Part shown: positions 16,901 through 45,349 of the stretch, one piece after another
How positions within the stretch are numbered: position 1 is the stretch's first letter
Layout of the letters: each line of letters begins with the position of its first letter
Origin: Anthoceros angustus
Taxonomy: Eukaryota; Plantae; Anthocerotophyta
Assembly (NCBI GenBank): GCA_010909165.1
Contig: MU008183.1
Location: 744,001-808,000 of the forward strand
Direction: 5' to 3'
Length of the DNA: 64,000 nucleotides
Notes under the pieces: generated by a model
The model's input: the letters and a program-made list of their open reading frames with translations, nothing else
The model's database searches: none
What the model was told of the DNA's origin: nothing
Position numbers and translations under genes: made by a program

Positions 16901-19900
16901 TTCTTACGACTGTCCTGGGCCAGTGACAGTCTCTGCCTTGTTTCCAACAACAACCTTGACAATCTAGTTAATTCAGCCTCGAGGCTGTCTTGAGCGGCTT
17001 TCGCCCCCTCAAGGCTGCCAGTCAGGCTCTGCTTCTCAGCATTCCACGACTCACGCTCCTGGTGATGAGAACGCTCGCCCTCGGCCCTTGATGCCTCCTG
17101 CCGCTCCAGCTGAAGCTCCAAGCTGGAAATCGTAGAACCTAGTTCCGCAGTATGTTCCTGAGCGGTCTCCACTGCCAGTCTCAGACGCTGTCGCTCAGCA
17201 GCAAGCGTCTCCCTCTCTTGTTCCCATTGTGACTCCTTGCATCGAATTCCATCCTCTGCAGCCTGCAGACTGCTCGTCAGCTCCTGCAATTCCGCTTCCA
17301 TTATTGCAAGCCTCTCTGCTAGCCTGCAAGCTTCAGCGGTTCCGTTAGCGGAGTCTGCCTTGGCCTTAGCAAGATCGGCAGAGAGCTGTTTTTGCTCCAC
17401 CGTCCACTGAAGAGCAGCGGAGCATGATTGGTTCAGGGATAGCGTCAAGCTCGCCACCTCAAGATCCAACTGCTGAATTCTGCCTTGGAGCTCGTCCACC
17501 TCAGAAGCCTTCCTGGTTCTATCATTCCTCGTCTCCTCCAGCTGCAGCTGGACTTCCTCCAGCCTCCTCGCCCAAGTTGTCTCTGCCTGGGCAGTGCTTG
17601 AAGTCTTCTCGACAAGCGTTCTCCTTGCAGTCTCCAACTCTGCCTCCAACAGCTCAGTCTTACTTCCCTTCTCCTTTGCCTCTCCTAATTCAGCTGCAAT
17701 CAGGTTCATCTCCTCACCCTGCTGGGAAAGAGCAGCCTTCAGATCCTCCACCTCAGATTCCAAGAGGGCAGCCTTGCTTCCCTTCTGCTTTTCCTGCACC
17801 AATTCTGCTGAAATTACGTTCATCTCGTCAGCCTGCTGGGAGAGAGCAGCCTTCATGTCCTCCACCTCAGATTCCAAGAGAGCAGCCCGGTCGTGCAATT
17901 CACAGAAATTGTCCTGTTTGTTCCTCACGAACACTAGGGCAGCATATGCCTTCCTCTCAGCCTCACCACACTTCAACTCCAGCTGCAGCATCTCGGCTTG
18001 CAATTCGGTAGCTTTCCTGGACATGATGTCTGCAGCATCGCTGAGCACGATAATCTGCTCCTTCAGTTCTGCCTTCTCCTGTTGGTGAGACTGGTGGAAC
18101 TCTGACACGGACTTGCTGAAAGCCCGGAGCTCAGCTTCAGTGTCCCTAGCCAGACAATGCGCGCTCTGGAGCTTCTTCTGCATAATCTCCAAAGGCCTGC
18201 CCCTATCAGCCACTTTGAAGGAAGAACGGACAGAGCCGTGATCGACAGTCATCCTCTGAGAGAACGTTTCCTCGATGATCTCATCCATCTCTAAGGACGC
18301 ATCAAACAATGCCTGGTCACCTTCAGCAAGATATTCTGCCAGCTTCGCGGTGGCAGCTTCCCACTCTCTTCGCAGCGTCTCATTTTGCTGTTCCTGGTCC
18401 TTTAACATCAGCTTCAAATCATCAAGCTCAGCCGTTAACTGGCGGATTGTCTCTGCTGCCGATGCCTCGGCTGCTGCCCCTTCCTGCATGTCCAGCAGTT
18501 CGGACTGCAACGCAGTGATTGTTCTTGCCGTCTCCGTCTCAGCTTGCGCGCGGGTGGTGTCCATGTCTCGTTCCCTGGCCAGCTGGGCAGCATGTTGCGC
18601 TTGCAGCCTCTCGTTCAAGCGTTGCGCTTGCTCGAGCTCCCTTCTGCTTTCATCCAGCCTACCCTCCAGTGCAGACTTCCATGTCCCGTCATATGCTCCG
18701 CTCCTCTGCTCCTCCGCGGACCTGGTATGGAACTCGGCCTCAAGCTTCTTCAGCTCGTTTGTTTTCCTCAGTTCAAATCGAAGGTGATGAACTTGCTCTT
18801 CGAGCAGCTTGTTCTGTTCCTCACTCTTCTGTAAGCTCACAACTGACTCCTCCAGCTCCCGAATGGTGAACACCTGCTGACCCTCCATAGCCTCCACCAC
18901 AGCCTTTTCCTCGTTCAGCTTCTCCGTCAATTCCCCAACCTGCTGGCTGAGCTCTGCACATCTTTCCTCCAGGACTTTCCTTTGCGTCTGCTCTTCCTCA
19001 AGCATCGCCTCGTAGGACTCGATTTCCAACTGCAGTTGCATGACCTCCTCGGAATGCCTCATCTCAAGGGAATGCACTTTCTGCATTCGTCCAGAACAGC
19101 TCGCATCTCCTGACCTGTCATCCCCATCCCCATCGCCTCCAGCTGTTGCTGTCACCGACAACTTCTCGATCAGACTGCGGGCTTCCTGAAGCTGAGTCTT
19201 GAGCTCCTCAAGTTCCATTTGGACCTCGTCCTTTTCCTCGTCACCTGCAATAGTGGGCTGTGGCTCCTCCTGTTGGTCCAGCTCAATCCTCTCCTCCCGA
19301 TTCTGCTCTGGTGATAACATCCGGATCGCAGTTTGAGCCTTCAAATCAACCTCTTTTTGCTGCCACATAGCAGCCACCTCCTGAACATTGGACAGGGATT
19401 CCCTCTGCTGCAAAGCCCTCTCCTCCGTCTCCATCCTCAATCGCTTTACCGAAGCTTGAGCAAAGAATGCAGTTTCCTGGACATGCTTCCGCAGCCCCTC
19501 TGCTTCCTTCATACCATCTTCCAGCTGTCGTTCCACCTGCAATCTCAACTCAGTCTCTTGCTCCCGCAGCGCAATTTCCTGCTGAACCCGCTCTTGTTCC
19601 TGCACAAAGAGCCAAACAACCCATCAAACATCACCATCCATCCTGAGTCGCTCTCCTCCCCTTTACGACATGCACAAACCTTCTTCAACTCTTCCTCCAG
19701 CCGAGCCACGACGTCCCTGCTCTTCACAAGCTGCTCTTCGAGCTCCTCGACTCTCTCTTGGTTGGACGCCCTCGCCTACCAAGACAGAAGACAAAATCAC
19801 CCGTCTCCAGCATCAAAACAACAATCACCCACCTCCAGCATCAAAACAGCATAAAACCAGTCCCAATCATCTTCGTCGCAATCAGCATGGCCATCAACAC

Positions 19901-27379: not shown

Positions 27380-30300
27380 TCATGGAACAAGCACAGCGTT
27401 CCTTTTCGTGACTGCCTCTGACAAGTCCAAACCCTTCTTCACTTTCAAGAAGACCGGTTTCAGCAATGCTTGACTTTTGGGATGCTTATTATCCCCGGCC
27501 ACAAAATTGTGCTTCAATCCATCCACGTCTGTCCACCAGCTCTGGCCTGGCTGCTTCCATGCCCTGACTTTCATTCTTCTCTCCTGCATTTCCTGTGCCT
27601 GCTCCCACATCCGGGCACTGGTGTATATGTTCGACATCAACACATATGCTGAGGTATCTTTCCTGTCAAGCTTTACTGCCTCAATGAAAGAATGGTATCC
27701 CACCTCCACATTGCTCCACTTTCGACAAGCACCCAAAAGCGTGTGCCAAACTCCAGCATTAGGAAGTACAGGCATTGTCCTTACCAAAACTAGCGCCTCA
27801 TCAATTCGGCCTGCACGACCCAGGAGATCCACCATGCATGTATAATGTTCCACTGTGGGAGTGACGCTGCAGTGACTGCCCATAGCTTGAAAGTACTCTC
27901 TTCCTTTGTCCACAAGTCCAGCATGACTGCATGCTGTTAGAACACTAAGGAATGTGATGCTGACTGGCTCTATGCCATCCTCCATCATTCTCTGCACCAA
28001 CTCAAACACCACTTCACTGTCTCCTTGACAGGTGTAGCCTGCAATCAGTGCACTCCAGGCGAAAACATCTGGTTCGGCCAACGCATCAAACACTTGCTGT
28101 GCATCGATCATGCTCCCAGACTTCCCATACATGTTTATCAAACTACCGGCTATAGACAAATTGGATTGAAGCCCCTGTTCTTCAACCTGAGCATGTAGCT
28201 GCCTCCCTAGATGCAGGGCAGCCTCATTTGCACATGCCTTCAGGAGGCACACAAAGGTCACAGCGTTGGGTATAGCGATATCTTCTTCATGCATAGAACT
28301 ATAAAGAGCCAGGGCTTCCTGGCACATGCCCTGCTGGGAATACCCCACAATTAAATGAGTCCACGTTGCCACACTTTTTTCAGCAAGTCCATCAAACACT
28401 GTCCGAGCATCCTCTAGGCTGCCACACTTTGTATACATGTATACCAAACTGCTGCTGGTTAGAAACACGTCAGCTTCATGTCCTCGTTCTCTGATTTGTG
28501 CATGAAGCAGCTTCCCCGTCTCCAAAGCTGGGTAGCCAACGGTTGCACATGCCTCCAGGAGGCACACAAATGCCACCCAATCAGGCACAGCTATGTCGTC
28601 TTCTTGCATAGCACTGTAAAGAAGAAGCGCTTCCTGGGCCATCCCCTGCTGGCAGTATCCTGTAATTAGAGCAGTCCATGCCACAACATCTTTTTGAACG
28701 AGACCATCAAACACTCTCTGAGCATCCTTTAGGCTGCCACACTTTGCATACATATGTACCAGACTATTGCCGACTAACACATCAGTTTCATGTCCGCGTT
28801 CTCTAATCTGCACATGGAGCTGCTTCCCATTTTCCAAAGACCTGGTGCCAACACTTGCACATGCCTGCAGGAGGCACACAAATGTGACAGAATTGGGTAC
28901 AGAGATGCCTTCCTCCTGCATAGCACTGTATAGATGAAGGGCTTCCTCGCCTAAGCCCTGCTGGGAATATCCTGCCATCAGAGCAGTCCATGTCACCACA
29001 TCTTTTTGGTTGAGTTCGTCGAACACACTCCGAGCATCCTCTAGGCTGCCGCACTTTGCATACATGCTTACTAAACTGTTGGCTATGTACACATCTGTTT
29101 CGTGTCCATGTTCCCTAATTTGTGCATGAAGCTGCTTCCCCTTCTCTAATGCCTGGGTGCCTACACATGCACATGCCTGCAGAAGAGACACAAATGTCAC
29201 AGAATTTGGTACAACAATGCCTTCTTCTTGCATATCACTGAAGAGATGAAGGGCCTCCTGACCCATGCCTTGCTGGACGTATCCCGCAATTAGAGCTGTC
29301 CATGTCACTACATCTTTCTCATTAAGTCCGTCAAACACTTTCTGAGCATTGTCCAGGTTGCCACACTTTGCATACATGTTTACCAAACTGCTGGCCACAA
29401 TAGCATCCGCTTGATGTCCATGTTCTCGAATCTGAGCATGAAGCTGCTCCCCCTTCTCCAAAGCTGGGGTGCCCACACTTGCACATGCCTGCAGGAGGCA
29501 CACGAATGTCACACAATCAGGTGCGACCTTGCCATCTTCTGACATAAGACTGTGAAGATGAAGGGCTTCCTGGCCCATGCCATGCAGGGAATATCCTGCA
29601 ATGAGAGCTGTCCAGGTCACTGCGTCTTTTTGACAAAGTTCATCAAACTCCCTCCGGGCATCCTGCAAGCTACCACATTTTGCATACATGTGTATCAAAC
29701 TGTTGGCTACAAACACACCACCTTGGTATCCACGCTCTCTAATTTGTGCATGAAGCTGCTTCCCCTTCTCCAAGGCTGGGGTGCCCACACTTGCACATGC
29801 CTGCAGGAGGCACACATATGTTACAGAATCAGGTACAGTCATGCCATCTTCTTGCATATCACTGTACAGACGAAGAGCTTCCTGGCCCATGCCTTGCTGG
29901 GAGTACCCAGCGATTAGAGCAGTCCATGTCACAACATCTTTTTGGGCAAGTGCGTCAAACTGCCTCTGAGCATCATCTAGGCTGCCACACTTTGCATACA
30001 TGTTTACCAAGCTGTTGCCTACAAACATATCTTTTTGTTTTCCGCATTCTCTGATTTGAGCATGAAGTTGCTTTCCCTTCTCTAAAGCTGGGGTGCCCAC
30101 ACTTGCACATGCCTGCAGGAGGCACAGGAATGTCACGGAATTGGGCTCAACGCCACCTTCTTGCATAGCACTGTAGAGATGAAGAGCATCCTGTCCCCTG
30201 CCCAGCTTGGAGTATCCTGCCAGCAGGGCATTCCATGTTACAACATTTTTATCAACAATTCCATCAAACACACCCTGAGCATCCTCTAAGCTGCCACACT

Positions 30301-31207
30301 TTGCATACATGTCCACCAAGCTACTACAGACAAACAAATCAGGCTCGAGCCCACTGGCCAGCACATCTGCATGCACCTGCTGCCCAGTTTTCAAGTGCGA
30401 TCCCCTTGCACAAGCCTGAAGGGCTGCCACAAATACATGGCCATCTGGCTTCACACTTGACTTGCACATTCGATGATACAGTCGTATGGCCTGCTTGTCT
30501 TGTCCATGTTTGACGTGCGCAGAAATTATGGAAGACCACATGAAGGCATCTGGTGTGGCAGCCACGTTGAACACATCCATGGCATCTTCCAACCTGCCAT
30601 ACGAAGCATACATTCGCAGAATGTGGTTGCACAGGAACGTGTCCGACTGAAACCCATATTTCACCGTTAAAGCATGGACGCGGCGACCCAAAACAAGATC
30701 CTTCTCGACCACACACTTCTTGAGGACAGTATAGAAGAGAGATTTGGAAATGCAACAGTCTGCCTGCACCAGACTTCCCAGAGCCTCGACAGCTACAGTG
30801 AGATAGCCCTGATGACATAGATTGGTCACGGTTTCAGCCGTTACGCCCCTTTCAGATGCTGCAGCCCTGCCAGAATCGGGATCATACTGCAATGTCGTTA
30901 GCCAGAGGACCCCCTCGAACTCCCTATCCCTCGATTCAGGCCAACAGACGCTCTTCTTATCTGGCCTACGACCCTCCCTACAAGATCCATCTCCAGCCAG
31001 ACATCCTCTTGAACATGCTGGTTCCCGTATGAAAATGCTGCACCTAGCCGCCACCGCTTGGTTGCTTGCAGTCAGATGGGCGGGAACTCGTCCTACAATA
31101 CCTCTTATTGCACCATTTTCTTGACTCCACGACGTGGTCCTCAATGGGATAGCCGAGCCGCAACCCCTTGCTATGGTGTAAGTCACATGACTGTGTAGAT
31201 CACACAT
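27380..31207 (-). CDS. PLS-class pentatricopeptide repeat protein (about 9-10 PLS triplets, P2-L2-S2, E1, E2, E+ with PGQSWW box, no DYW deaminase); organellar RNA-editing specificity factor
   Basis: Intronless 1,275-aa ORF. Repeated DVVTWTALIAGY / SVTFVCLLQACA / VGNSLVHMYAKCGSL motifs. Ends VEHYTCMVDLLGRAG...WKQPGQSWWTDVDGLKHNFVAGD with no HxE/CxxC motifs. True start codon uncertain. Confidence 0.95.
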   Translation of the reverse strand: MCDLHSHVTYTIARGCGSAIPLRTTSWSQENGAIRGIVGRVPAHLTASNQAVAARCSIFIREPACSRGCLAGDGSCREGRRPDKKSVCWPESRDREFEGVLWLTTLQYDPDSGRAAASERGVTAETVTNLCHQGYLTVAVEALGSLVQADCCISKSLFYTVLKKCVVEKDLVLGRRVHALTVKYGFQSDTFLCNHILRMYASYGRLEDAMDVFNVAATPDAFMWSSIISAHVKHGQDKQAIRLYHRMCKSSVKPDGHVFVAALQACARGSHLKTGQQVHADVLASGLEPDLFVCSSLVDMYAKCGSLEDAQGVFDGIVDKNVVTWNALLAGYSKLGRGQDALHLYSAMQEGGVEPNSVTFLCLLQACASVGTPALEKGKQLHAQIRECGKQKDMFVGNSLVNMYAKCGSLDDAQRQFDALAQKDVVTWTALIAGYSQQGMGQEALRLYSDMQEDGMTVPDSVTYVCLLQACASVGTPALEKGKQLHAQIRERGYQGGVFVANSLIHMYAKCGSLQDARREFDELCQKDAVTWTALIAGYSLHGMGQEALHLHSLMSEDGKVAPDCVTFVCLLQACASVGTPALEKGEQLHAQIREHGHQADAIVASSLVNMYAKCGNLDNAQKVFDGLNEKDVVTWTALIAGYVQQGMGQEALHLFSDMQEEGIVVPNSVTFVSLLQACACVGTQALEKGKQLHAQIREHGHETDVYIANSLVSMYAKCGSLEDARSVFDELNQKDVVTWTALMAGYSQQGLGEEALHLYSAMQEEGISVPNSVTFVCLLQACASVGTRSLENGKQLHVQIRERGHETDVLVGNSLVHMYAKCGSLKDAQRVFDGLVQKDVVAWTALITGYCQQGMAQEALLLYSAMQEDDIAVPDWVAFVCLLEACATVGYPALETGKLLHAQIRERGHEADVFLTSSSLVYMYTKCGSLEDARTVFDGLAEKSVATWTHLIVGYSQQGMCQEALALYSSMHEEDIAIPNAVTFVCLLKACANEAALHLGRQLHAQVEEQGLQSNLSIAGSLINMYGKSGSMIDAQQVFDALAEPDVFAWSALIAGYTCQGDSEVVFELVQRMMEDGIEPVSITFLSVLTACSHAGLVDKGREYFQAMGSHCSVTPTVEHYTCMVDLLGRAGRIDEALVLVRTMPVLPNAGVWHTLLGACRKWSNVEVGYHSFIEAVKLDRKDTSAYVLMSNIYTSARMWEQAQEMQERRMKVRAWKQPGQSWWTDVDGLKHNFVAGDNKHPKSQALLKPVFLKVKKGLDLSEAVTKRNAVLVP

Positions 31208-31539
31208 GACTGGACATGCAATTCAACAAATGTCCTCGACCAAAACATGAAACCGATCGTTAGAGGTTGCCATGCACAGCTGTAATTCTCTCTTCCACGG
31301 CAACATTCAGTGTGGTGAACATCACATTGTACGTTCATGTTAAACCCTAGTGCAAAACATGCATCATGGAATCCTCCTCAACTGAGCAAGTCCAGCTCCT
31401 GCGGATGTCCCAATGTAGCAGTGAAACAGCAGAGGGGCGGGAAATTAAATACCTCGATGCTGTCTCCTCAACGCAGCTGCCGACGACGATGAGGACTCTG
31501 GTGCACCTGCCGATGGGTCGGCTGCCAACTGACCCCGCA
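31208..31539. promoter_or_regulatory. Probable bidirectional promoter region between the PPR (-) and Ycf54-like (+) genes
   Basis: Divergent candidate start codons only about 330 bp apart. Confidence 0.4.
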
Positions 31540-32543
31540 ATGGCAATGCCCAAATCTCCTGCGCAATTCAGCTCCCCCACTTCTTTCTCTCACTCCATTT
31601 CCCAGGGCAAAACTGTGTTCTGGCAGAAATGGTCATCTTCCCCCCGTGGATCCATCACGCTTGGAACACGCTTGCTCAGGTTCGCATCCTCGCAGCCTTG
31701 GGTTGCTGGAGCTCTCACCTCAGCCGCATCCCGGGCGTCCGATGACGGGGCTCATCTTGAAAGCAAGGTTTGAATTCTCGTCAGTCCTTGACAGAAGTAT
31801 TATGTCGCGAATTCTTGAGCAGGTGACAGTATAGCGGATTTGCTCTGTTGTGCATCCCCCTTACTGTTGTGGGCGCTGTGTGTCGCGCAGGTTTGGTACT
31901 TCGCGATTGCAAATGCTCAGTCGCTTATGTGAGTTCAGGGAGTTGCTCTTGCTTTGAAGCTTTCTATCCACCACTATTGTCTGTTTTCACTGACAACACT
32001 GTTGAATTCTGCGTCAGGTTGGAAGGCGCTGCTCTCGAAACTGTACTCCTGGATGGGATCCAGCGAGCTGAGAGGTGATGTTGCAAGCACGGCACGGCCT
32101 AGGTTTATATTCAGGCGATGTTTGTGGATGAAGCCTGTCCTGTAACATGTGCGTGGACTCATCACCATTGGCAGGGCTGGGAGAGACAGAGACGTGTGGC
32201 TTATCATGGAGCCTGCCTTCTTGACTGAAGATCCTGAACTCGAGTCTCTGAATTCTACGTTGCAGAAGCCTACTGCCGCCATCCTTTCATCAAATGCAGA
32301 CTGGATGCTCACTTATGTGAAAGAAAAGCTGCCTCAGGTACAACATTCAACAAATTTACCTCATCAAGTTTCTCCGGATTGGGTGCTAGAGGACGTCGTG
32401 CCAATAAGTTGCTTTCTCTGCGTGAGCTGGATCAGGCGGTAATAGGCAAGTTCCGTGCTCCCTCGGCTTCAGTTGGAAATCCATTGAAGTCGAACTTGGA
32501 GGCTGGGGGTGATCTCGTGGGCGGAGGAGGAATTTGGCATTAA
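31540..32543 (+). CDS. YCF54: Divergent Ycf54-like protein (DUF2488, Mg-protoporphyrin IX monomethyl ester cyclase accessory factor family) with predicted plastid transit peptide, 197 aa
   Basis: Exons 31540-31767, 31891-31928, 32018-32074, 32175-32337, 32436-32543, all GT-AG and in phase. Spliced product: Ser-rich N-terminus, then VWYFAIANAQSLMLEGAALETVLLDGIQRAERAGRDRDVWLIMEPAFLTEDPELESLNSTLQKPTAAILSSNADWMLTYVKEKLPQAVIGKFRAPSASVGNPL, matching Ycf54 motifs (YF..AN, DFW.V..PAFL, A.VSTN, GEF.APS...P.PL). Confidence 0.75.
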
Positions 32544-33416
32544 CGTGAGAGCCTGTGGGAGTGAGAGGTTCTCTCAAGAAGAAGAACGTAACCTGGAGCA
32601 AACCACGCCACTGTGCAGGTTAGTGAGTATGTCCTTCTACAGTTCGTTTCCTGAGAGGCTCTGAGCTCAACCCGTTTAGCTATGCTCCAGTAGCTAAAGC
32701 ACCTTAACCGCACGACATCCTTTCTTCTTCTCATCCGCTGTCGTTTGAGAATCCATACGCTGCTAGCAAGCTTCAGGAGGGCATGAAACCTTCCTCGACA
32801 TGAGGTTCTCGAAGGCTGCAGCTTCTCAAACTTTCAGTGTGACAGAGTCTTGTTCAATGAAGATTTATTTTTTCGAAAACCGTCAGTTAATCTCAGCGCT
32901 CGTTGGTTTACAGCACGAGCCACTTCTCTGATTCACTAGGTTTACAAGTCCGATGATTCACATTCCCCATCGTGAAGCTTGTTCGATCAGATGCAGGAAC
33001 AGGAAGAGTCTCGAGCGTGCTTATCAGCAAACTGTTTCTCTGTTTGTCTACGTTGGTAGCATTCGAAGAGGGAGGGAAAGGTCATAGACAGGGCATCACT
33101 TCACAGGTATAGGGACTGATGTTCGGTCTTCGAAACGGATCAAGAGCTGAAACGAGGCGATTTCAGTTGCTAACCGCGTTGCTGACACACCTTCATAAGA
33201 GGCAACGGTGTTTAGTCAAGCGAGCTCAATCCCAAATCCCTCCTGACTCTGCGCTCAGTTCGAAGTCACGCAGATCTGGAGGATTGCTATCCCAGCGGAA
33301 CTTCTTGTAGGTTTGCTATGCTGAATTCTCCCCGAAACAGGTTGCAATGCTGATTACAGCTCTAAAGAACCTTGCTGACCTGTTGTTCCTTTGCCTCTAG
33401 GCTGCTGACTGACAAC

Positions 33417-34150
33417 ATGGAGAAGGCGAAGCCTGCTGAAATTGATGGATGTTTTCTGCCTTACACGAACGGACGTGCTCGAAACTACAAAGGGACGCTG
33501 CAGGAGTACGCTCAGGCAGCCGGTGTGAGCATACCTGAATACGAAACCTTCGAAAGGCCTTCCGTGATGAACTGCTATTCGTCAGTAGTTGTTGTAGACG
33601 GAGTTTCCTACAGCAGCAGAGGCAAGCACCGCACCCGCAAGGGAGCCGAGCAGGACGCGGCGAAAGTGGCCATCAAGAAGCTGGAGCTCAGACCGCAGGT
33701 CGTGCCGGAAACAAAGCACCAGGCTAGGTTACCACACCGTTTGAGCTCGCATTTTCTAACACTGTATTCCTCCTTGTGCTCCATCGCAGGACAATCCGTT
33801 GGTCAATTCTCTCCTACGGAATGCCACACACTCACAGCTCAACCTGTCGCCCGGCGTTGTTGAAGAGCTCACCTCGAAAATTTCCTACATCCTGGCTAAG
33901 GAAGATTCCCTGACCGCGCTGAAGAAGGCGAAGGAGGAGTTCGATAGAGCCGTCACCAATCGCAAGCTCAAGCGCCTCGTGCAGGACGCCGTGGAGGAGG
34001 TTGAGTTCAAGTTCCAGCTGGTGAATGACCTGATCCACAAGGTGCGTATACTGTAACCTGGCGTTCCTATCACTGACCTAAATGAAACCCCGCCTGGAAG
34101 AGGCCTGATTTTGCTCTCGTCTGCAGCAAAACAAACACAAACCGAGCTGA
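33417..34150 (+). CDS. Small double-stranded RNA-binding protein with a single dsRBD plus a C-terminal helical segment (DRB-like)
   Basis: NYKGTLQEYAQ...PEY...YSSVVVVDG...RKGAEQDAAKVAIKKL is a canonical dsRBD. Probable exons 33417-33722, 33790-34041, 34127-34150. The first intron needs a GC donor. Confidence 0.75.
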
Positions 34151-34744
34151 ACGAGAGAGCTCTCTGCAGTCTGCAGGAGTCACCGTTGTGCAAGACTTCC
34201 AAAATGCTCCATGCAATGTCTCTGCCTGCTCTGACACACAGATTTCCAGTAGACATGATCTAGATTAGTTCCTTATGAAGACATGACTTTAGACATGAAG
34301 ATAAAGTTAGTTCTGAGCTCATGTACTTCATGATGGAGTCACTTGCATCTGGTAATAAAACTTGGCCCCCGATGGGGTCGGTAGAGGACTTCAGTCCTGG
34401 ACTCCTGCCTGCGTGAGGATATCCTGCCGAGAGTAACTCGAGTCTCCAGCAGTTGGTGGAGAAGAGCACGTTGGAAAGGGAGGAGAGGCTGCAGAGCGGT
34501 GGTTACAGCGAATCCTGGAAAAGAAGCCTCCATGTGCGCTCATCACATCGCGGTGAGTATGCATGCAGGGAATCCTGGATTTGTTTAAGGCTTTTAACCC
34601 AACAGACACTTCGATCATCCCCTGAGCTGATGAGCGCTATATAAGCAAGCGCGGGCGTGCGCTGCTAACAGCCCACATTGCAAGCACGCGAATTCGACGA
34701 AGTCTATCTCTCAATCGGCCGAGTCTCCCCCGGCGACGACAACC

Positions 34745-35784
34745 ATGGCCACCGCAAGGCGCGTCCTGGCAGCTGTGTGCGCGACGCTGCTGGTCGTCCT
34801 CCTGTGCTCGCAGCTGGACACGGCGGCGTGCAAGTCCAACTCGTCCAACAAGCCCGAATGCAGCAGCACCCAGCTCTGCCCCAACAACCAGTGCTGCAAC
34901 AACTACGGCCACTGCGGCTCCACCGAGGCCTACTGCCACAAAGGCTGCCTCTCGCAGTGCGGCGACGGGAAGGGCAAGCCCAAGGGCGGCGACAACGGCT
35001 CGCACTGCTTCCCGGGCGACGCGATCGTGCACCTCGCCGGGGGCCGCACCAAGCGCGTGCGCGAGCTCGGACTCGGCGACGAGGTGGGTTTGCCGGGCAC
35101 TTCACAAATCCCTCTCTCGACAGATGCTCCAATCCAGAATCACGATGGGCTACGCTTCTCCTGCAGGTCGCAGTCTGGAGCTCCAAGACGGGGACCATCG
35201 TCTACGACCAAGTGTACGCGTTCGGGCACAAGGACCCCGACGCGGAGGCCGAGTTCGTCACCATCCACGCCGGCGCGGTCTCCGCGCTCCATCTCACCGC
35301 CCACCATTTCCTTCCGACGGCGACGGGGCCTGCAGGGCCGGCAGCGGTGTACAAGCGAGCGGGGGACGTGAAGATCGGCGACCTCGTGTGGGCGGGAGCT
35401 GGGAACGGCACAGCTCCGAGTGTGAGGGCGGTGAGCGGGATCTCCAGCGTCGTGCGCCAGGGCCTGTACAATCCGCTCACCATGAGCGGGACCATCGTGG
35501 TGGACGGCGTGGTGGCGTCGGTGCACAGCGACTGGTTCCTGGACCCGCTCTTCGACCTGCTGCGCGTCCCGCACCACCTGCCCGCCGCGTACCAGGCCGT
35601 GCTGGCTCCGGTTCGCCTGCTGTACACTGTGCTGGGGAAGCAGGCCTACGGGAGCATCTACAGCGCGCTGGACTCCCGCATCGATCTGGCCAGGTTCGGG
35701 AGCCACCACGGCGGCTCCGTCTTCACGCTCCTCCTCATGCTCGCTTTGTCGGCCACATTCATCTCGTCTTCCAAGAGAAGCTGA
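34745..35784 (+). CDS. Secreted hevein/CBM18 domain fused to a Hedgehog-type Hint (Hog) autoprocessing domain with a hydrophobic C-terminal tail, 318 aa
   Basis: Exons 34745-35083 and 35167-35784 (83-nt GT-AG intron, phase 0). Signal peptide; 8-Cys hevein pattern C39-C45-C50C51-C57-C64-C68-C72; H87|C88-F-P junction; LGLGDEV; T157-A-H-H160; GLYNPLTMSGTIVVDGVVASVHS; hydrophobic tail VFTLLLMLALSATFI. Confidence 0.9.
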
Positions 35785-37619
35785 CTGTCGGACAAACTCC
35801 GGCCAAATGTGCTGCCTGCTTTTACATAGCTTAGAATTAGAGCTAAATACGCATGTAAAGTGACATGACGAAGGATGTATGTAACTACATATGTACATCG
35901 TTTTTTTTCCATCGTTTTTTCCCTCAATAAAATATACTTTCCCTCAAATATACTTTCCCTCACACTCTCTTCACAAAGAGGGTAATAATGTGAACCGAAG
36001 CTCACACTCTTATATCCGAAACACTTTTTATAAAGGTTAATAATATCTTTGGTCATTCATTTAGAGTTTTATTTAATACATATATCATGAAGCCTGTCAA
36101 CCACCTGTGTCTATTTTTATTGAATTAAGTATATATAATTATATATATTAGATAGATTTTTTTGAATAAAAACTTACACTATTAGTAATTCATGATTTAT
36201 ATTAATAATTATATAAGTAAAATAAAATAAATTCAATATCAGAATATAAATTGATGTAAATTCTTTGATTCATATCGTCCTAAAACTAAGTCCTTACACC
36301 ATAACTTCATAGGTAACTCATAACCTATCATTGACACATGAAACACTCCAGAGTTACTATGTCCAAATGGCTTAGGCCAAATGGACACACATTTATAAGA
36401 ACGAATGTCGTGATTAAAAAGCACACCATGGTACAAGTTGTTAAGTACCAAGTCCCATGACGGAAATCCATCCTTAGTGGACTTAAATAAAGGTCTTCTT
36501 CTTCTACTACTACTATGACACATGAAGGCTTCAACATTGACACATGAAACAAATCATGATACGTAGAGAAGCTTCAGTAATCCAAATTGAGGAAATCTGA
36601 TGATGACACATAAAATACATTGTGATGGGTAAAGAAGTTTAGGAAATAGCGAGGAAAATATGAGACTCTCATGCACACAGAGTATGGGATCATGCATAGA
36701 CAAGAGTACCATGGTAGTAGACTTGTTCTCCTATGGAAGCCACTAGATCAAGAAGTACTTGCTCAAGTCCCATAGCGTGGAGGAACCAAGTTGGGTGAAT
36801 CTCAGAGACATAATTCAGCAAGGTATGCCCCTAACCAGTGGGTAATGATTCAGTTCGTAGGGGATAAGGGCAAATTCTATTTTCATGTTTATGGATATGA
36901 AATAGATCTACTTATGGAAAAAAATGAAATTAGGCTAAGTATATAGGTTAGTTTAGGGCGAGGGTTTAGAGTAAATATATGAGGTTCATAGTGGTGAGCT
37001 ATGTGAGACCACAACTTTTGCCAGGCATCTTTTGGAAGATGACCCTTGTTGGCAGTCTTGTGTTGTACTCTTTGCCCTGAAGTAAAGAGCAGCATAGAAG
37101 TAAGCTCTATGACCGCAAGTGACTGCATTTTCTGCTACGGGTCTTTTGGCCTAATGCTGTCCTGTGTAGTTAACAACAATAGGAAAGCACTTGGGCTAGT
37201 TGTGCTCAAGGTCCGCTAGTATGGATTACTTGTGCCCAGTCCCATCATTAGGCTTGCGCTCTAGGGCTAGTTGTGCATTGGGGTCCGAAAATAATCTGGG
37301 TCAAAGTAATTTTTTCATATGTATCAAGATATCCTGATTTGGATTTTGAAAATCCTCCTGACAAAAAAGTAGAGAAGTTTTTTTCCATAAGATGTTGGTT
37401 TATATATAGGAACTCATGAGGAAGAGAAAAATATAAGAAAGTAGAAGACGCACATTACGAAATTTCAAAAGCATGTCTGAGGTAGTAGGTAGACAAAGGA
37501 TGGGCAAGTAAAAGATATCTATAATCATGAGATAGTAGTAGACAAGACATTGACCATTTACCATCTCATGATTGAGACATAGTAGATGAACATACGTACT
37601 CACGAAACACTATTTTCAC

Positions 37620-37800
37620 AACGTATATGAGGATCAATAATACTTCATAGAAACCTTCAAAAAAAGGATGTCGTAAAGCCTGGTGTGCTGTTATTCTATC
37701 TTTACATTGAAAGACAAGTAGCTCTTTAAGTAATGACAAAGTAGTAGGATCAGATTTTGGCAATCGGACTTCAAAAGAATATGTTGCAACCACTGTTGAT
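37620..37800 (-). pseudogene. MAPK-like kinase C-lobe fragment, homologous to the relic at 57.9-58.8 kb
   Basis: FEVRLPKSDPTTLSLLKELLVFQCKDRITAHQALRHPFF aligns at both DNA and protein level with FEVRFSKADPTALSLLKRLLAFQLEDRITAKQALQHPFS (about 58540-58680). Confidence 0.7.
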
Positions 37801-39090
37801 GTCCTATTTAAAAAATAAAAAAATTAATAAACAATTATTGGTCCTCATTATTATTATTTTCAAATAACATTCCTCATAACTTGTAGTACAATTTCACCGT
37901 ATAATCCACATATCAATTGCTGATGTGTAGCATTTTGGATTTGTATACTAAGTTGCTGTCTGTTACAACCACATGTGCAACGGAGACTTGGTTCTCTCGG
38001 ATCTGAAATAGGGCAGTCGTGAGAGTTGCCATTCGGCCAAGTACGTGGGCACTCCTTGGAAGGAAAAAAATCCGCTCTCCTTGGCTATTGAGAACATGAC
38101 GTCTCGCATAGCGCCATGTGTAGAAATGTCATGCTTTCGAGTTGTATAGCAAGCTAGGTGAGTCCTAGAGTCGTTGAAAGGGCTTCCCTGAGCAAGAGCC
38201 GAGGCCAGCTCAAGCGAGTTGGGGAATGGAGGAATCCAGGAGTAGGAATGATGAAGAGCATTTCAGTCCCAATTAGATTTAGTTTTTGGATTCCTATACT
38301 CGATGGAGCATGCTTGTTCACTTGGATTGATCCTTTTTCTACTTCTTGAGCGGTTGTCTTGAAGAGCGCACTTTAGTCCCAGTCATCTCGAAGAACATAT
38401 AAATGTGGATATGGACTATCCATATCTCTAGCCGAAGTGCACCTCATAGTATGAGGATTATCATGACTCAATAGATCATTAGATGATGATGATGTATGAT
38501 TTTGATTGCTTAGATGAAACTTGTAGGACCACATGAAGAGGGATTTACAGAGATATAAATTTTTTTTTTTGAGCATTACAATGTAGGATAAGTTGGAGAA
38601 GCGAAAGATTGGTGTGTGTAAAGAGCTCATGTGAAAAAAAACTATGATTAATAATTTAAGGTGCAAAAATTGTAAAGGAGTTAGAGTCAATTTTCAAGAA
38701 GTTATTAAAGGTTGTAACTTTAACTTGTGTACACAAGGACCTTAGGAGATGGCCTTGATTTGAAGAAATGGTTGCAAGGATTCTATAGAGATAGCTTCTA
38801 TGTCTTAAATTTTTTTTTGAAGATTTAGTGCGCTAGTTTAGCATAACCTTCATGTTTTATAATTACTAATTAAAAAATTAGAGCTTGGACTTATCAATTG
38901 AATCAAATATTGAGCTTGGTCTTATCAATTGATCATGTCTTCTTAGTTGTAGTCTCATCCATAAATGGAAATAACAAGTTGAGAAGTCCTAGTGTTTAAA
39001 AACTATACATAAGTTATATATTAGAATTTATCATTAAATATATATATTAATTACTCATATACATGGACAATATTAAGGATATATTGAGAA

Positions 39091-42000
39091 TTACACATGT
39101 TTTGACAGGAAGAGGTCTTCAAACTCTCCATGGTTACCATTTGATAGTAACACATTCGTTTCCTCAACCTTTGCCTCCTGCTTCCATATAGGTCCTTGCG
39201 GTTGACATTTTTGTAAGATTTCTACCACTTCTTGCATAGAGGGTCGATGTATAGGTATCAACTTTGTACACAATAATCCAAGTTGGAGCACATGCAACAT
39301 ACTATCATCCCACTCCGCTGCCAATGTGATGTCACGCAATTCAACCCCTTTTTCCCATTGGTTAGCTGCCCAGGCACCCAAATTGACCCCTTCCCCAAAC
39401 ACCTTGATATCAAGAGGCTTCCTTCCTGTTACTAGCTCTAACAAAACTATTCCAAAGCTGTAAATGTCACTCTTCTCTGTAATATTGTTTGTATAACTAT
39501 ACTCTGCAAAAGCACCACCACCATGTATGGTTAATAGAGGGCTAAAGTATAAACTACTAGAGCTGATGGCAATGCCGCAGGTTTGGAAACAAATAGGTTG
39601 CGGGGTCGATCTCACCTGGCGCAATGTAGCCCCTGGAACCGGCCACGCCGGTGACGGCGTCGTCCGCGGCGCCGACGTCGTCGTTTACCATCTTGGCCAG
39701 CCCGAAGTCCGAGAGGCAGGCCTCTAAGTCGACGTCGAGCAGGATGTTGTTGGCCTTGATGTCGCGGTGCAGGATCTGGCCGTCCGGCGCGTGGTGGTGG
39801 AGGTACGTCAGCGCGTCGGCCACACCGACCGCGATGCGGAACCGGCTGCGCCAGTCCAGCCCCCCGCCTGCCGGTGGCGCGTGAAGTACGTCTCCCAGGC
39901 TCCCGTGCGGCATGTACTCGAACACCAGCATGTTCCAGTCGCGCGTGGCCCCGCTGCACAGCAGCTTCACGATGTGCCGGTGCCGCGTGTTCCGGCCCAG
40001 CGTCTGAACCTCGGCTTCGAACCCGTGGTCAGCATGCTTCTTGTCCGACTGCAGCCCCTTGGGCTTGGGCAGCAGCTTCGCCGCCACGCTCGTCCCGTCC
40101 CGAAGCTCGACCTTGTACACCTGCCCGGATGCCCCGGCCCCGATCAGGCGCGCGCCCCGCAGCCCTGCCAGCACCTCCTCGGGTTCGAACCACAGGTCCT
40201 GGAACGACTTGAACGACCACTGGTCCGCGTCGCCGCCGACCTCCTGCCGAGCCCGCAGGGAGAAGCGCCTCAAGCCAGGCAGCAGGCGGTCGCAGCCAGA
40301 GCCACGGCCGCGACCGCGACCGCCAGGCTCACCCAGAGCCAGCTCCGGGTGCCGCGCGTGCCGGTGGTGAGGCTCGGGCAGGCTCACCCAGGCCGCACAG
40401 GCCCGGGTTGTCGAGGAAGGAATTGCCATAGGCGCCGGAGTCGAAGGCCGGCGGGATCGGGCCCGAGAGATCGTTGCTGGAGACGTCGAAGAAACTGAGG
40501 GTGTTGCGGAATCCGGGAGGGATGGCGCCGGAGAGTTTGTTGTCGGAGAGGTCGAGGACGGTGAGAGTGGAAAGATTGGCGAGAGATGGCGGGATGGAGC
40601 CGGAGAGCAGGTTCTTAGAGAGGTCGAGCTGCTCCAGTCTCCCGCAGTTGCCGAGCTCGGAAGGGATGGCGTCGGAGAGGAGGTTGGATTCCAGATAGAG
40701 AACCTCCAGCAAGCTGAGGTTGCCGAGACTCGGCGGGATGGCGCCTTCCAGCGAGTTGTGAGAGGCGTCTAAGCGCACCAGGGAAGCAAGATTGCCGAGC
40801 TCCGGCGGGATCGGGCCGGAGAAGCGGTTGTTGCCGATCACCAGCATGGTGCGACTCGGGGAGGCGCCTGCTTCCGGCGGGATGCTGCCGTTGAAGAGAT
40901 TGTAGGAGATGTCGATGTAGTCTAGGGTAGGGCTGGCCCAGAGCTCCTTGGGGAAGCTCCCGGAGATGGAGTTGTTGGAAGTGCGGAGGCCGTGGAGAGA
41001 GCTGCATTTGGCGTAGGAGGCCGGGAAGGGCCCGGAGAAGGCGTTGGACTGGATGGCCAAGGTTACGAGCTGGCCGGCGTTGCATGCGGCCCAGGGCACG
41101 GGGCCGGAGAAGCTGTTGGACGCGATCTCGAACTGCTTCAGCGGGCTGTTGGCGCCGAAGGTCTGCGGGAAGGGCCCGCTGAGCAGGTTGTTGAAGACGG
41201 TGAAGTTGGTGAGCTTCGTCAAGCCGGCCATGGCGTCCGGCACGCTCCCTGTGAGCATGTTGCTGATCATGGAGAACGTGGTCAGGTTGCTCCACTCTCC
41301 CAAGTCCTGCGGGAACTCCCCGCTCAGCTGGTTTGTGCTCCCGGAAAAATCCTCCATGTGCACCAGCTTCCCCATCCCGGACGGCAGGGTGCCGCTCAGC
41401 CGGTTGTCGTTGAAGTAGAACGCCTGCAAGCTGGTGAGCTCGGTGATGGCCTGCGGGATGGATCCCGAGAGCTGGTTGTTTCCGAGGTAGAGCGTTACCA
41501 GGTTCTTGAGCGTGGACACTGTATGTGGGATGGAACCTGTGAGCAAGTTCCCGGTCAGATCCAGTGCCTGGAGCGCCGTGAGGTTGCCGATGGAATCGGG
41601 GATGCTGCCGGAGAGGAAATTGCCGAGAGCCTGGAAGTCCTGCAGCTGCGTGAGGTTGCTCAGATCTGGAATGCTCCCGTTCAGCTGGTTGTCCCCGAGG
41701 TGGAGCAAGGCCAGGTTCCGGAGGCTCCCGACGGACGCCGGGATCGGGCCTGTCAGCATGTTCTGCGTGAGATCCAGGTAAGTGAGATTGGTGAGCCTCC
41801 CGATGCTTTCCGGGATGGAGCCTGTGAGAAGATTGTAGCCGAGATTCAGCACCGTGAGCTGCGTGCTGCCGATGGAATCGGGGATGGTGCCGGTCAAATT
41901 AGAGCAGTGATCCGCCTGGAACACCTGCAGCTGCGTCAGATTGCTGAAATCGGGGAGCAAGGCTCCTTCCAGCCCGTCGTTCCAGTGCACCAGAAGCGTC

Positions 42001-42593
42001 TGCAACCTCGCCAGCTTCCCGTACGCGGCAGGGATGCCCCCGGTGGTGAAGAGGTTGGACTGGAGCACCAAGGTTTGGAGCCTCCATAGCTCCCCGATGG
42101 AGGGAGGCATGCTCCCGGTCAGGTTATTCTCCCCGAGGTCCAGCGTCACCAGGTTCTGGAACACGGCGAACTTGTCCGGCAGCTCGCCCCCGATCAGGGT
42201 GAGCCGCACCTGCATGAACGTCAGCCCGGTGCAGTTGAAGAGGCCGTCGGGGAAGCTCCCGTTGATTCCCGTCATGTTGTACAGCAGCAGCACCTGCAGG
42301 GTGGGGATGTTGCAGAAGGCGGGCACCAGCGGGCCTGACAAGTCGGCGGAGGAGATGTCGAGACCAGTGACCACCTGGCTGCCTCCGCTGCCGCTGCCGC
42401 TGCTGCTGCACTGCACGCCGCTCCAGGAGCACACCGGGATGGAGGTGCTCCAATTCTCCAGCGCCCCTCCGGGATCCTCCAGGGCTGCTTTGAATGCCAG
42501 CAGGTTCGCCATGTCCGACTCTGCTCCTGCCCTAGCTGCCGGAAGCAGGAGCAGGCATGCCAGGAGCAGCGGGACGCGGCTGGAGCAGGCCAT
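39091..42593 (-). CDS. LRR receptor-like kinase (LRR-XI-like, RD kinase); as sequenced it has two 1-bp frameshifts flanking the transmembrane helix
   Basis: ATG 42593 with signal peptide; LRRNT (LLAFK...W..C.WSGV.C); over 20 plant LRRs; GNSFLDNPGLC cap; TM WLWVSLAVAVAAVALAATACCL in a different frame; kinase GAGASGQVY, HRDIKANN, DFG, GSRGYIAPEY; intron 39504-39615. Confidence 0.88.
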
Positions 42594-43456
42594 GGGGAGC
42601 CCCGAGCTCCGCGACCTCGCCCCGGCAGCAGCTGGGAGGTCCGCCGAAGGCTGTGCCTGATCAGACAGATCAAGAACTCCGCAGCACAGAGCCAGGTGGG
42701 ATTGGCCTGGTTGGAGGAGCTTTGGGTGGCGCGCGGTCGTTGGTGGTGTTGCCAGGATGCTGCGGAGGGTGCTGCGGAGCCGCCCTCGTGCGCTGTCCTT
42801 GAAGTATATATATTCGGTTAAGTGCTGAAGAACCTTCTTTTGCGAGTCGGTCAAGGTCCTCGCGCCATCAACCGGCCTTTGCTGATGCACATCAATCCAA
42901 GATGCTCGCCGGTCACCCGCTCCACCTCAGCATGCAGCTGTGGCCCCAGTTCCCATGCACATAGGCCAAGGCCACCATAGATTCGAGCCCGTCCCGTCGG
43001 ACGGGGCCGGTGAAGAAAATGGTCACGGTTAACAATATCCCGTTTGGCAAAGTCGGTAAGGGAATTGTCCTGTGTGAGTGCGGGTTTTCGGCTCCCTCCC
43101 GCAAGCTGCTCTGAATGATCAGACCGTTTTCGTTCAGATCGGCGGGTAGTGAAAGTATGGGAGCCGGCTTGCTGCAGCTGGAAAGCTCGGAGAATTGTGG
43201 GTGTTGGGTTTGTGAATCTCTCGCAGCTTCCTGGTTGAGGGGTTCCTGTCTGTGACATTCTAATCCAAACCAGCATGAGAGGATGTCTCCGGAGCATACG
43301 GAATATGGGGAACTGGAAGATGCAAGGAGGGTTTTTGACAGCTTTTTCACAGGATCCTGTATGGACAAATGGAGCAGGAGGGCCAGACTGTGACTGATCC
43401 TGCTCCTGATCCTGATCTTGTTACTTTCGCTCATCTGCTGAAGACCTGTGCCCGCT

Positions 43457-45349
43457 TGTTAGAGATTCAATCCTTTGCTACTAGTATATTAGGATATACT
43501 AGGATATTGTACTCTCGAGTCTAGGGCTTACCTCCTCGATAATTGCCTAGCCTAAGGGCTATATATGTAGCACCGTGTGCACCATATCGATGTGTACTGT
43601 GGAGCCTATCTAAGCCAGTGGTGCTATTGCATGTGCCATCCATTGCCTCTTCTTGTGTCTGCTAACTGTGTTGATCCTGTGCGTTGCCCAGGCTGTGTTG
43701 TGTCTGAGCTAGTTCTTACATGGTATCAGAGCAGGAACACTAATCGCGAGACTTGATAAGAGAGGACGGAGTTGTGATGGTGATGGGCTCAGTTACCACC
43801 GCGGCCTTGAGGACGCGGGTGTTTGATGGAGCGGAGTTCCATGTATGGAAAAGGTCCATGAAGGTTCTGCTGATGGCAGAGGACGCGTATGGCATTGCCG
43901 AGGGCAAAGAGCCGAAACCCGAAGATGAGGGGAGAGAGCAGAGAGAATGGATGCGGAGAGACCACAAGGGTACAGCCCTCCTATACATGAATCTCTCTAC
44001 GGCGGTCCAGCTGAAGGTCGGAGAACCAGACAAGGGCACGGAGTATATTTGGAATCTTCTCAATGAGAAATATGGCCAGAAGGGAGCAGGTGAAGTATTT
44101 CACTTGTTTTGTCGTGTGACGACATTGAAGTATTCAGACGGAGACAATTTGCGAAAGCACATCGACACCTTTCACGAACTGTTTACAGCGCTAGCATCAG
44201 CTAACGAGCGCTTTGCTATCCAGGAGGACATACAGAAGATGTTTCTATATCGTTCTATGCCCGAAGCTTGGTCACGGTTCATAGATATCCTATTAGCCCA
44301 AGACACTCTCACATGGGAGGAGGTCACCTCTAAGATGTTGGCGAAGGAGACTCGCCAGTTGGACGCAATGGCGGGATCTTCAACAGGTCCGCAGCATGCG
44401 ATGTTCATCAAGGGGAAGGGACGGAACAACCGGAACAAGGATAAGCAGGGGGAGTCCTCGCAGGGACAGAAGGACAAGAGAATAGTGGAGGGGCGATGTA
44501 AATGCTTCAAGTATGGTCATTATGAGAAGGATTGCAAGGATCTAAGACCGCACATCTCACGGAGGGTGAGAGTAAAGGTGAGGTTGCGAGGCAACGCCGC
44601 AGAAGAAGCATCGCACGCCAAGCAGCCGAAACGATGGATAGATCGCATGTACATCCTTTATGGTGAAGGATAAGGAGCTCCTTCAAGACTACAGGAGGGA
44701 GAAGATGCGCCTAGGGAACGAGATAGCGATCCGAGGGTGTGGGGAGGGCTCATTGCTCGACGGCGAGGTCAAGGCAATGGAAGGAGAGCTGTTTGTATCG
44801 AACCTACGTAGAAATGACGAAATTATAGAACAATGAGGTCACTGGCCCTTCATCACACCGACTAAATCGCCATGAACCTGAGTATAAGGCGCCAGCGCGG
44901 TGTAAATGACTCGACAGGAAGTGATGCCGGAGCCGAGAATGCCCGAAACCGATGGATGAATACCTACAAAAACCAAACCAACTTCAGTTTCCGGCGAAAA
45001 AGGGTTGGGATTTTTTCCAAAACCCCTTTTGACAGGAGAAACCTCTTTCTAAATAGACGCTGTTTTTAGCTTGAAGGGGGAGTGTTAGAGATTCAATCCT
45101 CTGCTACTTACTCTAGTATATTAGGATATACTAGGATATTGCACTCTCGAGTCTAGGGCTTACCTCCTCGATAGTTGCCTAGCCTAAGGGCTATATATGT
45201 AGCACCACATGCACCATATTGATGTGTACCGTGGAGCCCATCTGGGTGCTATGCTATTGCGCAGCCATCCATTGCCTCTACTTGTGTCTGCTAACTGTGT
45301 TGATCTTGTGCGTTGCCCAGGCTGTGTTGTGTTTGAGCTAGTTCTTACA
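43457..45349 (+). mobile_element. Internally deleted (non-autonomous) Ty1/copia LTR retrotransposon, 1,893 bp
   Basis: LTRs 43457-43720 and 45083-45349 (TG...CA); PBS TGGTATCAGAGC (tRNA-iMet) at 43721; PPT ttgaagggggag 45071-45082; 5-bp TSD CCGCT on both sides; gag present; integrase/RT/RNaseH absent. Confidence 0.95.
43753..44673 (+). CDS. Copia gag ORF (UBN2-type) with a degenerate zinc knuckle
   Basis: FDGAEFHVWKRSM, YSDGDNLRKHI..F, LYRSMPEAW..F, CKCFKYGHYEKDC. Confidence 0.8.
   Translation: MIREDGVVMVMGSVTTAALRTRVFDGAEFHVWKRSMKVLLMAEDAYGIAEGKEPKPEDEGREQREWMRRDHKGTALLYMNLSTAVQLKVGEPDKGTEYIWNLLNEKYGQKGAGEVFHLFCRVTTLKYSDGDNLRKHIDTFHELFTALASANERFAIQEDIQKMFLYRSMPEAWSRFIDILLAQDTLTWEEVTSKMLAKETRQLDAMAGSSTGPQHAMFIKGKGRNNRNKDKQGESSQGQKDKRIVEGRCKCFKYGHYEKDCKDLRPHISRRVRVKVRLRGNAAEEASHAKQPKRWIDRMYILYGEG

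Follow-up and report, generated by a model that had tools for sequence, protein, structure and literature searches.

Hevein domains of plants are usually joined at their C-terminal side to Barwin, to a chitinase or to a short pro-peptide, and ordinary hevein precursors carry a C-terminal pro-domain that gets cleaved off. Genes for Hog domains are known from Physcomitrella and Selaginella (Bürglin 2008, PMC2362128), in agreement with the mention of some non-seed plants in a preliminary description of the locus reported here, and the paper in question is without mention of chitin or hevein. In a 64,000-nucleotide (nt) stretch of contig MU008183.1 (positions 744,001 to 808,000; the whole stretch is called the window hereafter), positions 34745-35784 of the forward strand encode a protein of 318 amino acids (aa), composed in order of a signal peptide, a hevein/CBM18 domain, a Gly/Lys linker, the junction H87|C88-F-P, a Hedgehog-type Hint domain, a helical adduct-recognition region (ARR) and a hydrophobic tail. 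We consider it likely that this is a real Hog-family gene with a hevein cargo and that its product cleaves itself, leaving the nature of the adduct aside. Hog genes of non-seed plants being a known family, it is the combination with hevein that is rare and apparently undescribed; in the literature searched, no paper linking hevein with Hint or Hedgehog was found, nor any experimental work on plant Hog proteins.

The best named matches, with 42-53% identity, are the Hog proteins of Marchantia paleacea (KAG6550003.1), Diphasiastrum complanatum (KAJ7298589.1), Ceratodon purpureus (KAG0565218.1), Adiantum capillus-veneris (KAI5067500.1) and Selaginella moellendorffii. They share with the window protein the signal peptide, the C-F-P junction, the FGH[KN]D and TxxH motifs, a motif J without Cys and the ARR motif HS[DE]WFLD...YQ..L.P.R, and most of them also the tail of GG[ST], hydrophobic and basic residues. 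Their cargo, however, is none at all, a Pro-rich stretch, a small 4-Cys peptide, a STIG1-like Cys-rich region or a ~250-aa domain of unknown family, and never hevein.

The C-terminal domain of animal Hedgehog (Hh-C; 1AT0 and 6TYY) has ~25% identity to the window protein and has in common with it the catalytic Cys at the junction, TxxH, motif J of the form G.Y.PLT..GTIVV...AS and a helical region after Hint. The window protein differs from Hh-C in having His for the Asp general base, Val for C143 and His87 for Gly, an ARR unrelated in sequence to the sterol-recognition region (SRR), a predicted extra membrane helix at the C-terminus, and a lectin peptide in place of the Hedge signalling domain as cargo. 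With hevein-like peptides and lectins (1HEV, 1ULK, wheat germ agglutinin) it shares the eight-Cys CBM18 pattern and the core CPNN.CC..YG.CG....YC, but it has a shorter first loop, an extra Cys (C29) and Asn for the binding-site Ser, and its C-terminal partner is a Hog domain, predicted to be self-cleaving.

Domain architecture of the hevein-Hog protein

When exon 1 (34745..35083) and exon 2 (35167..35784) were joined, a single open frame of 318 aa plus stop (TGA, 35782..35784) was obtained. The intron between them (35084..35166, forward strand as all parts of this gene) is 83 nt long, has GT..AG ends (GTGGGT...CCTGCAG) and lies in phase 0 at the junction GDE|VAV, E113 being the last residue of exon 1. 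The clean joining of the frame at canonical splice ends bears out the one-intron model of the preliminary description. Exon 1, one continuous frame of codons 1-113, carries the signal peptide, the hevein domain, the linker and the first 26 Hint residues, and exon 2 opens with VAVW... and runs to the TGA. Since hevein, linker and C88-F-P all lie within exon 1, the hevein-Hog fusion is independent of the splice model. Database searches were made with the two exon translations separately, and the joined protein was used in local scripts only.

The Pfam model Hint (PF01079) matched aa 86-112 with its profile positions 11-37 and the start of exon 2 with its positions 43-162 (E 3.8e-21). Exon 2 alone scored 76.1 bits against a cut-off of 29.7 and the exon 1 part 20.3 bits; the profile positions being contiguous over both exons, the profile runs on across the proposed splice. 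The Hint core (aa 114-234, 35167..35529) is supported by Pfam, by alignment to 6TYY and 1AT0, by AlphaFold2 and by Foldseek. Exon 2 also matched the sequence of Drosophila Hh-C 6TYY (E 1.7e-5), and the residues of the window protein correspond to those of Drosophila Hedgehog as follows: C88 to C258, H134 to D303 (D46), T157 to T326, H160 to H329, and V232 to C400 (C143). C88 (codon 35006..35008; C-F-P-G-D-A) is the predicted catalytic nucleophile, H134 (35227-35229) occupies the general-base position in the alignment to Hh-C, and T157 (35296-35298) and H160 (35305-35307) form the TxxH of block B. H134, within YAFGHKD, falls opposite the introduced His in 6TYY, the structure of the D46H mutant of Hedgehog. 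Motif J of the Hint core reads GLYNPLTMSGTIVVDGVVAS, in which V232 replaces Hedgehog C143. In the alignment of 60 relatives, H134 and H160 are invariant and C-F-P is nearly invariant.

An AlphaFold2 model of the Hog part, built from the 60-sequence alignment, reached a predicted local distance difference test score (pLDDT) of 91.4 and showed a beta-rich Hint domain, four helices and a long terminal helix. Among solved structures Foldseek gave Hh-C 6TYY and 1AT0 as the best folds (template-modelling score 0.75 by target, root-mean-square deviation 2.1 Å), and inteins all ranked lower. The four helices (pLDDT >85) make up the ARR (aa 235-296, 35530..35715), of which the motif HSDWFLD...LP..YQAVLAPVR..Y is conserved in the 60 relatives. 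Alignments to the predicted Swiss-Prot models of Hedgehog, Warthog and Qua-1, both sides being predictions, extended to residue 172 of the modelled piece and thus into the SRR/ARR of these proteins. The ARR is followed by a C-terminal hydrophobic segment (aa 297-312, SVFTLLLMLALSATFI; 35716..35763) with a hydropathy of 2.4, predicted as a long helix, and by SSSKRS; as judged from its hydropathy, this segment probably anchors the Hog fragment in the membrane. All the motifs named at the outset, namely H87|C88-F-P, T157xxH160, GLYNPLTMSGTIVVDGVVAS, FLDPLFDLLR...YQAVLAPVRLLY and the hydrophobic stretch 298-312, were found in place, and the assignment of the Hint domain to the Hedgehog type and not to the intein type, with a helical region behind it where Hedgehog has its SRR, was upheld by Pfam, by the sequence match to Hh-C, by AlphaFold2 and by Foldseek. 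No Hedge (HH_signal) domain was matched by Pfam in the window protein, the N-terminal domain being hevein.

An intein was considered and rejected. The Hint fold is common to inteins and bacterial intein-like domains as well (Foldseek E 1e-5 to 1e-2), but the window Hint domain scored best with the Hedgehog-type Pfam model and the Hh-C structures, ends in VVASVHS-DW without a terminal His-Asn and without a C-extein nucleophile, and continues into the ARR.

The N-terminal part begins with a predicted signal peptide (aa 1-28, 34745..34828), in which a pair of Arg, a hydrophobic core at residues 7-21 (Kyte-Doolittle maximum 3.0) and a putative cleavage site TAA|C were recognized. The Cys-rich hevein/CBM18 domain follows (aa 29-72, 34829..34960), identified by Pfam and by sequence search of the PDB. 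Chitin_bind_1 (PF00187) matched aa 42-72 with a marginal 28.8 bits against a cut-off of 27.8. In the PDB search, the 63-aa hevein piece matched pokeweed lectin-C (1ULK, E 3.6e-16), hevein (1HEV, E 1.4e-5), wheat germ agglutinin and several hevein-like antimicrobial peptides. The eight hevein Cys stand in canonical order (C39-x5-C45-x4-C50C51-x5-C57-x6-C64-x3-C68-x3-C72) and all of them are in register with the PDB matches; apart from the first loop (C-x5-C), which is shorter than that of hevein, the spacing is canonical. C29 is an additional Cys at the predicted mature N-terminus, so that the eight-Cys domain of the preliminary description stands while the region before Hint holds nine Cys in total. 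The cysteine pattern and the matches support the assignment of the N-terminal domain to CBM18.

The sugar-binding positions of this domain are N52, Y54, H56 and Y63, the counterparts of which in hevein we take to be S19, W21, W23 and Y30. Y54-G-H56-C-G and Y63 align with YGHCG and the Tyr of one repeat of wheat germ agglutinin, presumably its domain B. Between the hevein domain and the Hog part lies a Gly/Lys-rich linker (aa 73-87, GDGKGKPKGGDNGSH; 34961..35005), the last residue of which, H87, directly precedes the scissile bond; the linker had a pLDDT <50 in a low-confidence model.

Relatives, rarity of the hevein cargo and transcripts

An exhaustive HMMER search of 1.84 billion representative proteins gave 2935 matches at E <=0.001 and 457 at E <=1e-10. 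In a maximum-likelihood tree the window protein was placed inside a clade of 19 liverwort, moss, lycophyte and fern proteins with support of 100/99, and green-algal and metagenomic Hog proteins fell outside this land-plant clade. The His at position 134 is invariant across the plant and algal clade. The intron of the window gene lies at the same codon boundary (GD[EK]|VAV, phase 0) as the intron of the Selaginella gene P0007, which apparently uses a GC-AG intron at this common position, and the Hog gene of Marchantia paleacea is intronless.

Several observations were made on the family as such. Selaginella moellendorffii (GL377597.1, L004:501-1469; P0001-P0008) has a multi-gene Hog family, in which the cargo is nothing, Pro-rich or a small 4-Cys peptide; the database names "warthog protein 4/6" given to some of its members are misleading. 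The liverwort, lycophyte, moss and fern proteins P0058-P0062 and P0069 carry a ~250-aa cargo domain without a Pfam family, with a Gly-rich hydrophobic end before C-F-P, which is probably the "conserved upstream region" of Bürglin.

Among 60 close Hog relatives, Chitin_bind_1 was detected by Pfam in two, P0064 and P0206, both of them unnamed transcript contigs. P0064 (309 aa, from a transcript contig of SRR17638753) has a Chitin_bind_1 score of 36.4 bits with hevein directly before C-F-P, and was the sole hevein carrier among the first 200 proteins fetched; P0206 (312 aa, SRR32617131/2) is a second fusion that was hidden beneath a shortened cluster representative. The window gene is not unique: at least two more natural hevein-Hog fusions are present in public transcript assemblies. 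With no more than these two among the 60 relatives, neither of them named, the architecture is not that of a widespread annotated family, a case that the preliminary description had allowed for. P0064 and P0206 have the same architecture of signal peptide, Chitin_bind_1, Hint and ARR, and the register of the eight hevein Cys also fits their hevein domains. They differ from the window protein in that the Hog part is 41-44% identical, hevein abuts the catalytic Cys with no Gly/Lys linker, the Cys of motif J is kept (ASCHS) and the hydrophobic tail is absent.

The two proteins did not group with the window protein in the tree, but a common clade was not rejected (approximately unbiased test, AU, p = 0.14), and the fusion may therefore have arisen once or twice. 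Chance is excluded as the origin of the hevein-Hog architecture, because there are two independent domain matches as well as homologues. A search of a collection of 5.8 billion proteins with exon 1 gave no match, but the length window of this search leaves out full-length fusions. When the hevein-junction region of P0064 was used as query, only P0064 itself and two plain hevein proteins were retrieved, and none of the ESM Atlas clusters with >=50 members combined hevein with Hint.

Seven RNA-type sequencing runs shared sequence words with the stretch, and four of them were aligned to the window. Run X3 (organism A) has contigs with 93-96% identity to the window. They span 34766-35001, then 35011-35081 linked directly to 35165-35326, and finally 35359-35690; the 83 nt left out at the link have GT..AG ends and are exactly the predicted intron. 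The hevein part is covered in run X6 (organism B). The X3 and X6 sequences are relatives or paralogues and not the window's own copy. When the differences of the relative were applied to the coding sequence, 32 codons were changed, of which 18 silently, and the catalytic residues covered by the relatives' contigs were unchanged. As judged from the codons, the comparison shows purifying selection on the hevein-Hog gene of the close relative. Run X7, the one run with exact identity to the window on the neighbour gene (34132-34282), showed no hevein-Hog transcript. Of the RNA check proposed for the 35084-35166 intron, splicing was thus observed in the copy of a close relative, and the copy in the window was without transcript in X7.

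Proposed processing and alternatives

The following steps were modelled on the autoprocessing chemistry of Hedgehog (PMC9163320, PMC4695875, PMC13738340), and secretion, cleavage, adduct, chitin binding and biological role of the window protein are all inferred. The signal peptide would direct the precursor into the endoplasmic reticulum, where the four disulfides of hevein would form, and the C-terminal hydrophobic helix would keep the Hog part at the membrane. C88 would then attack the carbonyl of H87 in an N-to-S acyl shift assisted by T157 and H160, and the resulting thioester would be resolved by a nucleophile, which the helical ARR would select or position and His134 would activate. A peptide of ~59 aa (C29-H87) would be freed, its C-terminus being a free carboxylate or esterified to a hydroxyl compound, sterol-like or other; the product of ~58 aa proposed in the preliminary description covers the same region, and the length becomes 59 aa with signal-peptide cleavage after A28. 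The Hog domain would act in effect as a self-cleaving pro-domain. From the known activity of hevein domains, one may reasonably guess at a function in the sensing of chitin or in defence against fungi.

A number of observations weigh against this reading. The Chitin_bind_1 match clears its cut-off by only 1 bit, and a Gln stands at position 56 of the hevein binding site in the copy of the close relative (H56Q); because of the marginal score, the change of Ser19 to Asn and the Q56 of the relative, chitin binding may be weak or lost. AlphaFold2 modelling of the hevein piece from a five-sequence alignment gave a pLDDT of 55, too poor for a fold search. The second catalytic Cys of Hedgehog, C143, to which a branched-intermediate role has recently been assigned (PMC12054796), is Val232 in the window protein, and the scissile bond is preceded by His87, compared with Gly in Hedgehog. 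No sequence match was found between ARR and SRR, the Pfam match stopping at profile position 162 of 213. The missing transcript in run X7 belongs to the same side. The Cys of motif J has been lost in Hog domains of moss and red algae as well (Bürglin 2008, PMC2362128), and therefore does not define the wider Hog family. The D303H (D46H) form of Hedgehog keeps its structure and its cholesterolysis and takes more sterols (reviewed in PMC9163320); His134 is therefore compatible with general-base catalysis. The invariant His at this position is a natural counterpart of the engineered D46H Hedgehog and fits a family facing mixed plant sterols.

The alternative that survives best differs from self-cleavage with a lipid adduct in the adduct only. 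It supposes that water or a nucleophile other than a lipid, for instance a sugar or a wall polymer, resolves the thioester; the hevein-type peptide produced would then be free and soluble, or joined to a partner that is not a sterol. We regard this as a tentative outcome. It is favoured by the lack of shared sequence between the ARR and the Hedgehog SRR, by the absence of C143, by the finding that Hedgehog thioesters are cleavable without sterol (PMC13738340) and by the case of nematode Hog proteins, of which the adduct is likewise unknown, hence the term "ARR" instead of "SRR" used by Bürglin (PMC2362128). However, the putative general base His134 is invariant in the family, and plain hydrolysis would not require one; the helical ARR shows strong conservation and can be superposed on the SRR in predicted models of Hedgehog proteins, and the predicted membrane anchor would put the Hog part beside membrane lipids. 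Attachment of a sterol or another lipid to the hevein peptide, as suggested by the Hedgehog analogy, ranges in our estimate from unlikely to tentative. The specific proposal that the Hog domain esterifies the C-terminus of hevein to a phytosterol or other membrane lipid, so that a chitin-binding peptide would sit on a lipid anchor at the cell surface, is to be placed at the unlikely end.

Absence of any cleavage, with the protein serving as a membrane-anchored chitin-binding surface protein and the Hint fold as a stalk only, is very improbable. The loss of C143, the unusual His87 before the scissile bond and the C-terminal hydrophobic anchor would suit such a protein, but the retention of C88-F-P, T157, H160 and H134 here and across the 60 relatives is hard to explain without catalysis. 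That the gene is silent or decaying in this genome, an assembly chimera or a contaminant is very improbable: run X7 is without coverage of the gene though exact on the neighbour, and no identical protein is on record, but the frame is intact, the splice sites are canonical, a TATA-like box lies 5' of the ATG, the start context is ACAACCATGG, relatives transcribe and splice a ~95% identical copy with changes mostly silent, the neighbours are typical land-plant genes, one of them with matching codon bias, the nearest relatives are land-plant Hog proteins, and contamination was rejected on gene context and phylogeny.

For the self-cleaving hevein-Hog protein as preferred here, the cargo is small and of a domain type with a well-known, easily assayed binding activity for chitin and N-acetylglucosamine, and the protein is therefore a convenient test case for what Hog domains outside animals attach to their cargo and for what such cargo does; cleavage, the chemistry of the adduct at the C-terminus and what becomes of the product are directly readable. 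If a released or lipid-anchored peptide is indeed formed, this would be a new maturation route for antimicrobial or lectin peptides of plants, and it would help to explain the many Hog genes with interchangeable cargo in non-seed plants. Should the adduct be a lipid ester, no lipidated hevein would have preceded it, and it would represent the first Hedgehog-type "cholesterolysis" chemistry of a plant. In a wider view, Hog could then be a general device for maturation and anchoring of secreted Cys-rich peptides in non-seed plants that was lost in seed plants.

Flanking signals and surrounding genes

The gene at 34745-35784 is an intact nuclear gene from a land plant, and this plant is most likely a non-seed plant. 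As read from the sequence, the TATA-like box (TATATAAG, 34638..34645, forward strand) lies ~100 nt 5' of the ATG and would serve as a promoter element, and an AATAAA (35926..35931, forward strand), a possible polyadenylation signal, lies ~145 nt 3' of the stop. No second copy (paralogue) of the hevein-Hog gene was found elsewhere within the window, no Rfam family within 30000-40000, and no notable repeats flanking the gene.

The hevein-Hog gene sits in a native land-plant locus. Directly upstream is a gene with a double-stranded-RNA-binding motif (dsRBD; 33372-34282, +), of which an 85-nt GT..AG intron (~34040-34124) was spliced out in run X7. Other genes include an intronless one (27383-31207, -) for a PLS-type pentatricopeptide-repeat (PPR) protein of 1275 aa with E motif, of the organelle RNA-editing-factor type, with no identical protein on record, and one (40332-42890, -) for a leucine-rich-repeat (LRR) protein with the plant-type N-terminal cap LRRNT_2. 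The GC content at third codon positions is 0.91 in the hevein-Hog gene, 0.84 in the LRR gene and 0.48 in the PPR gene, and codon bias thus differs strongly among neighbouring genes of the window.

A copia-type gag open frame was found at 43753-44670 (+; Retrotran_gag_2, E 2.7e-24), indicating a retrotransposon ~8 kb downstream of the hevein-Hog gene. At 13264-19605 (-), an uninterrupted open frame of 2114 aa, rich in E, L, A and Q and without a Pfam match at E <=0.001, looks like one giant coiled-coil exon. At 36349-36522, all four RNA-type runs showed contig depths of hundreds to thousands together with numerous loose ends and odd joints; a piece of some widespread repeat or mobile element probably lies here.

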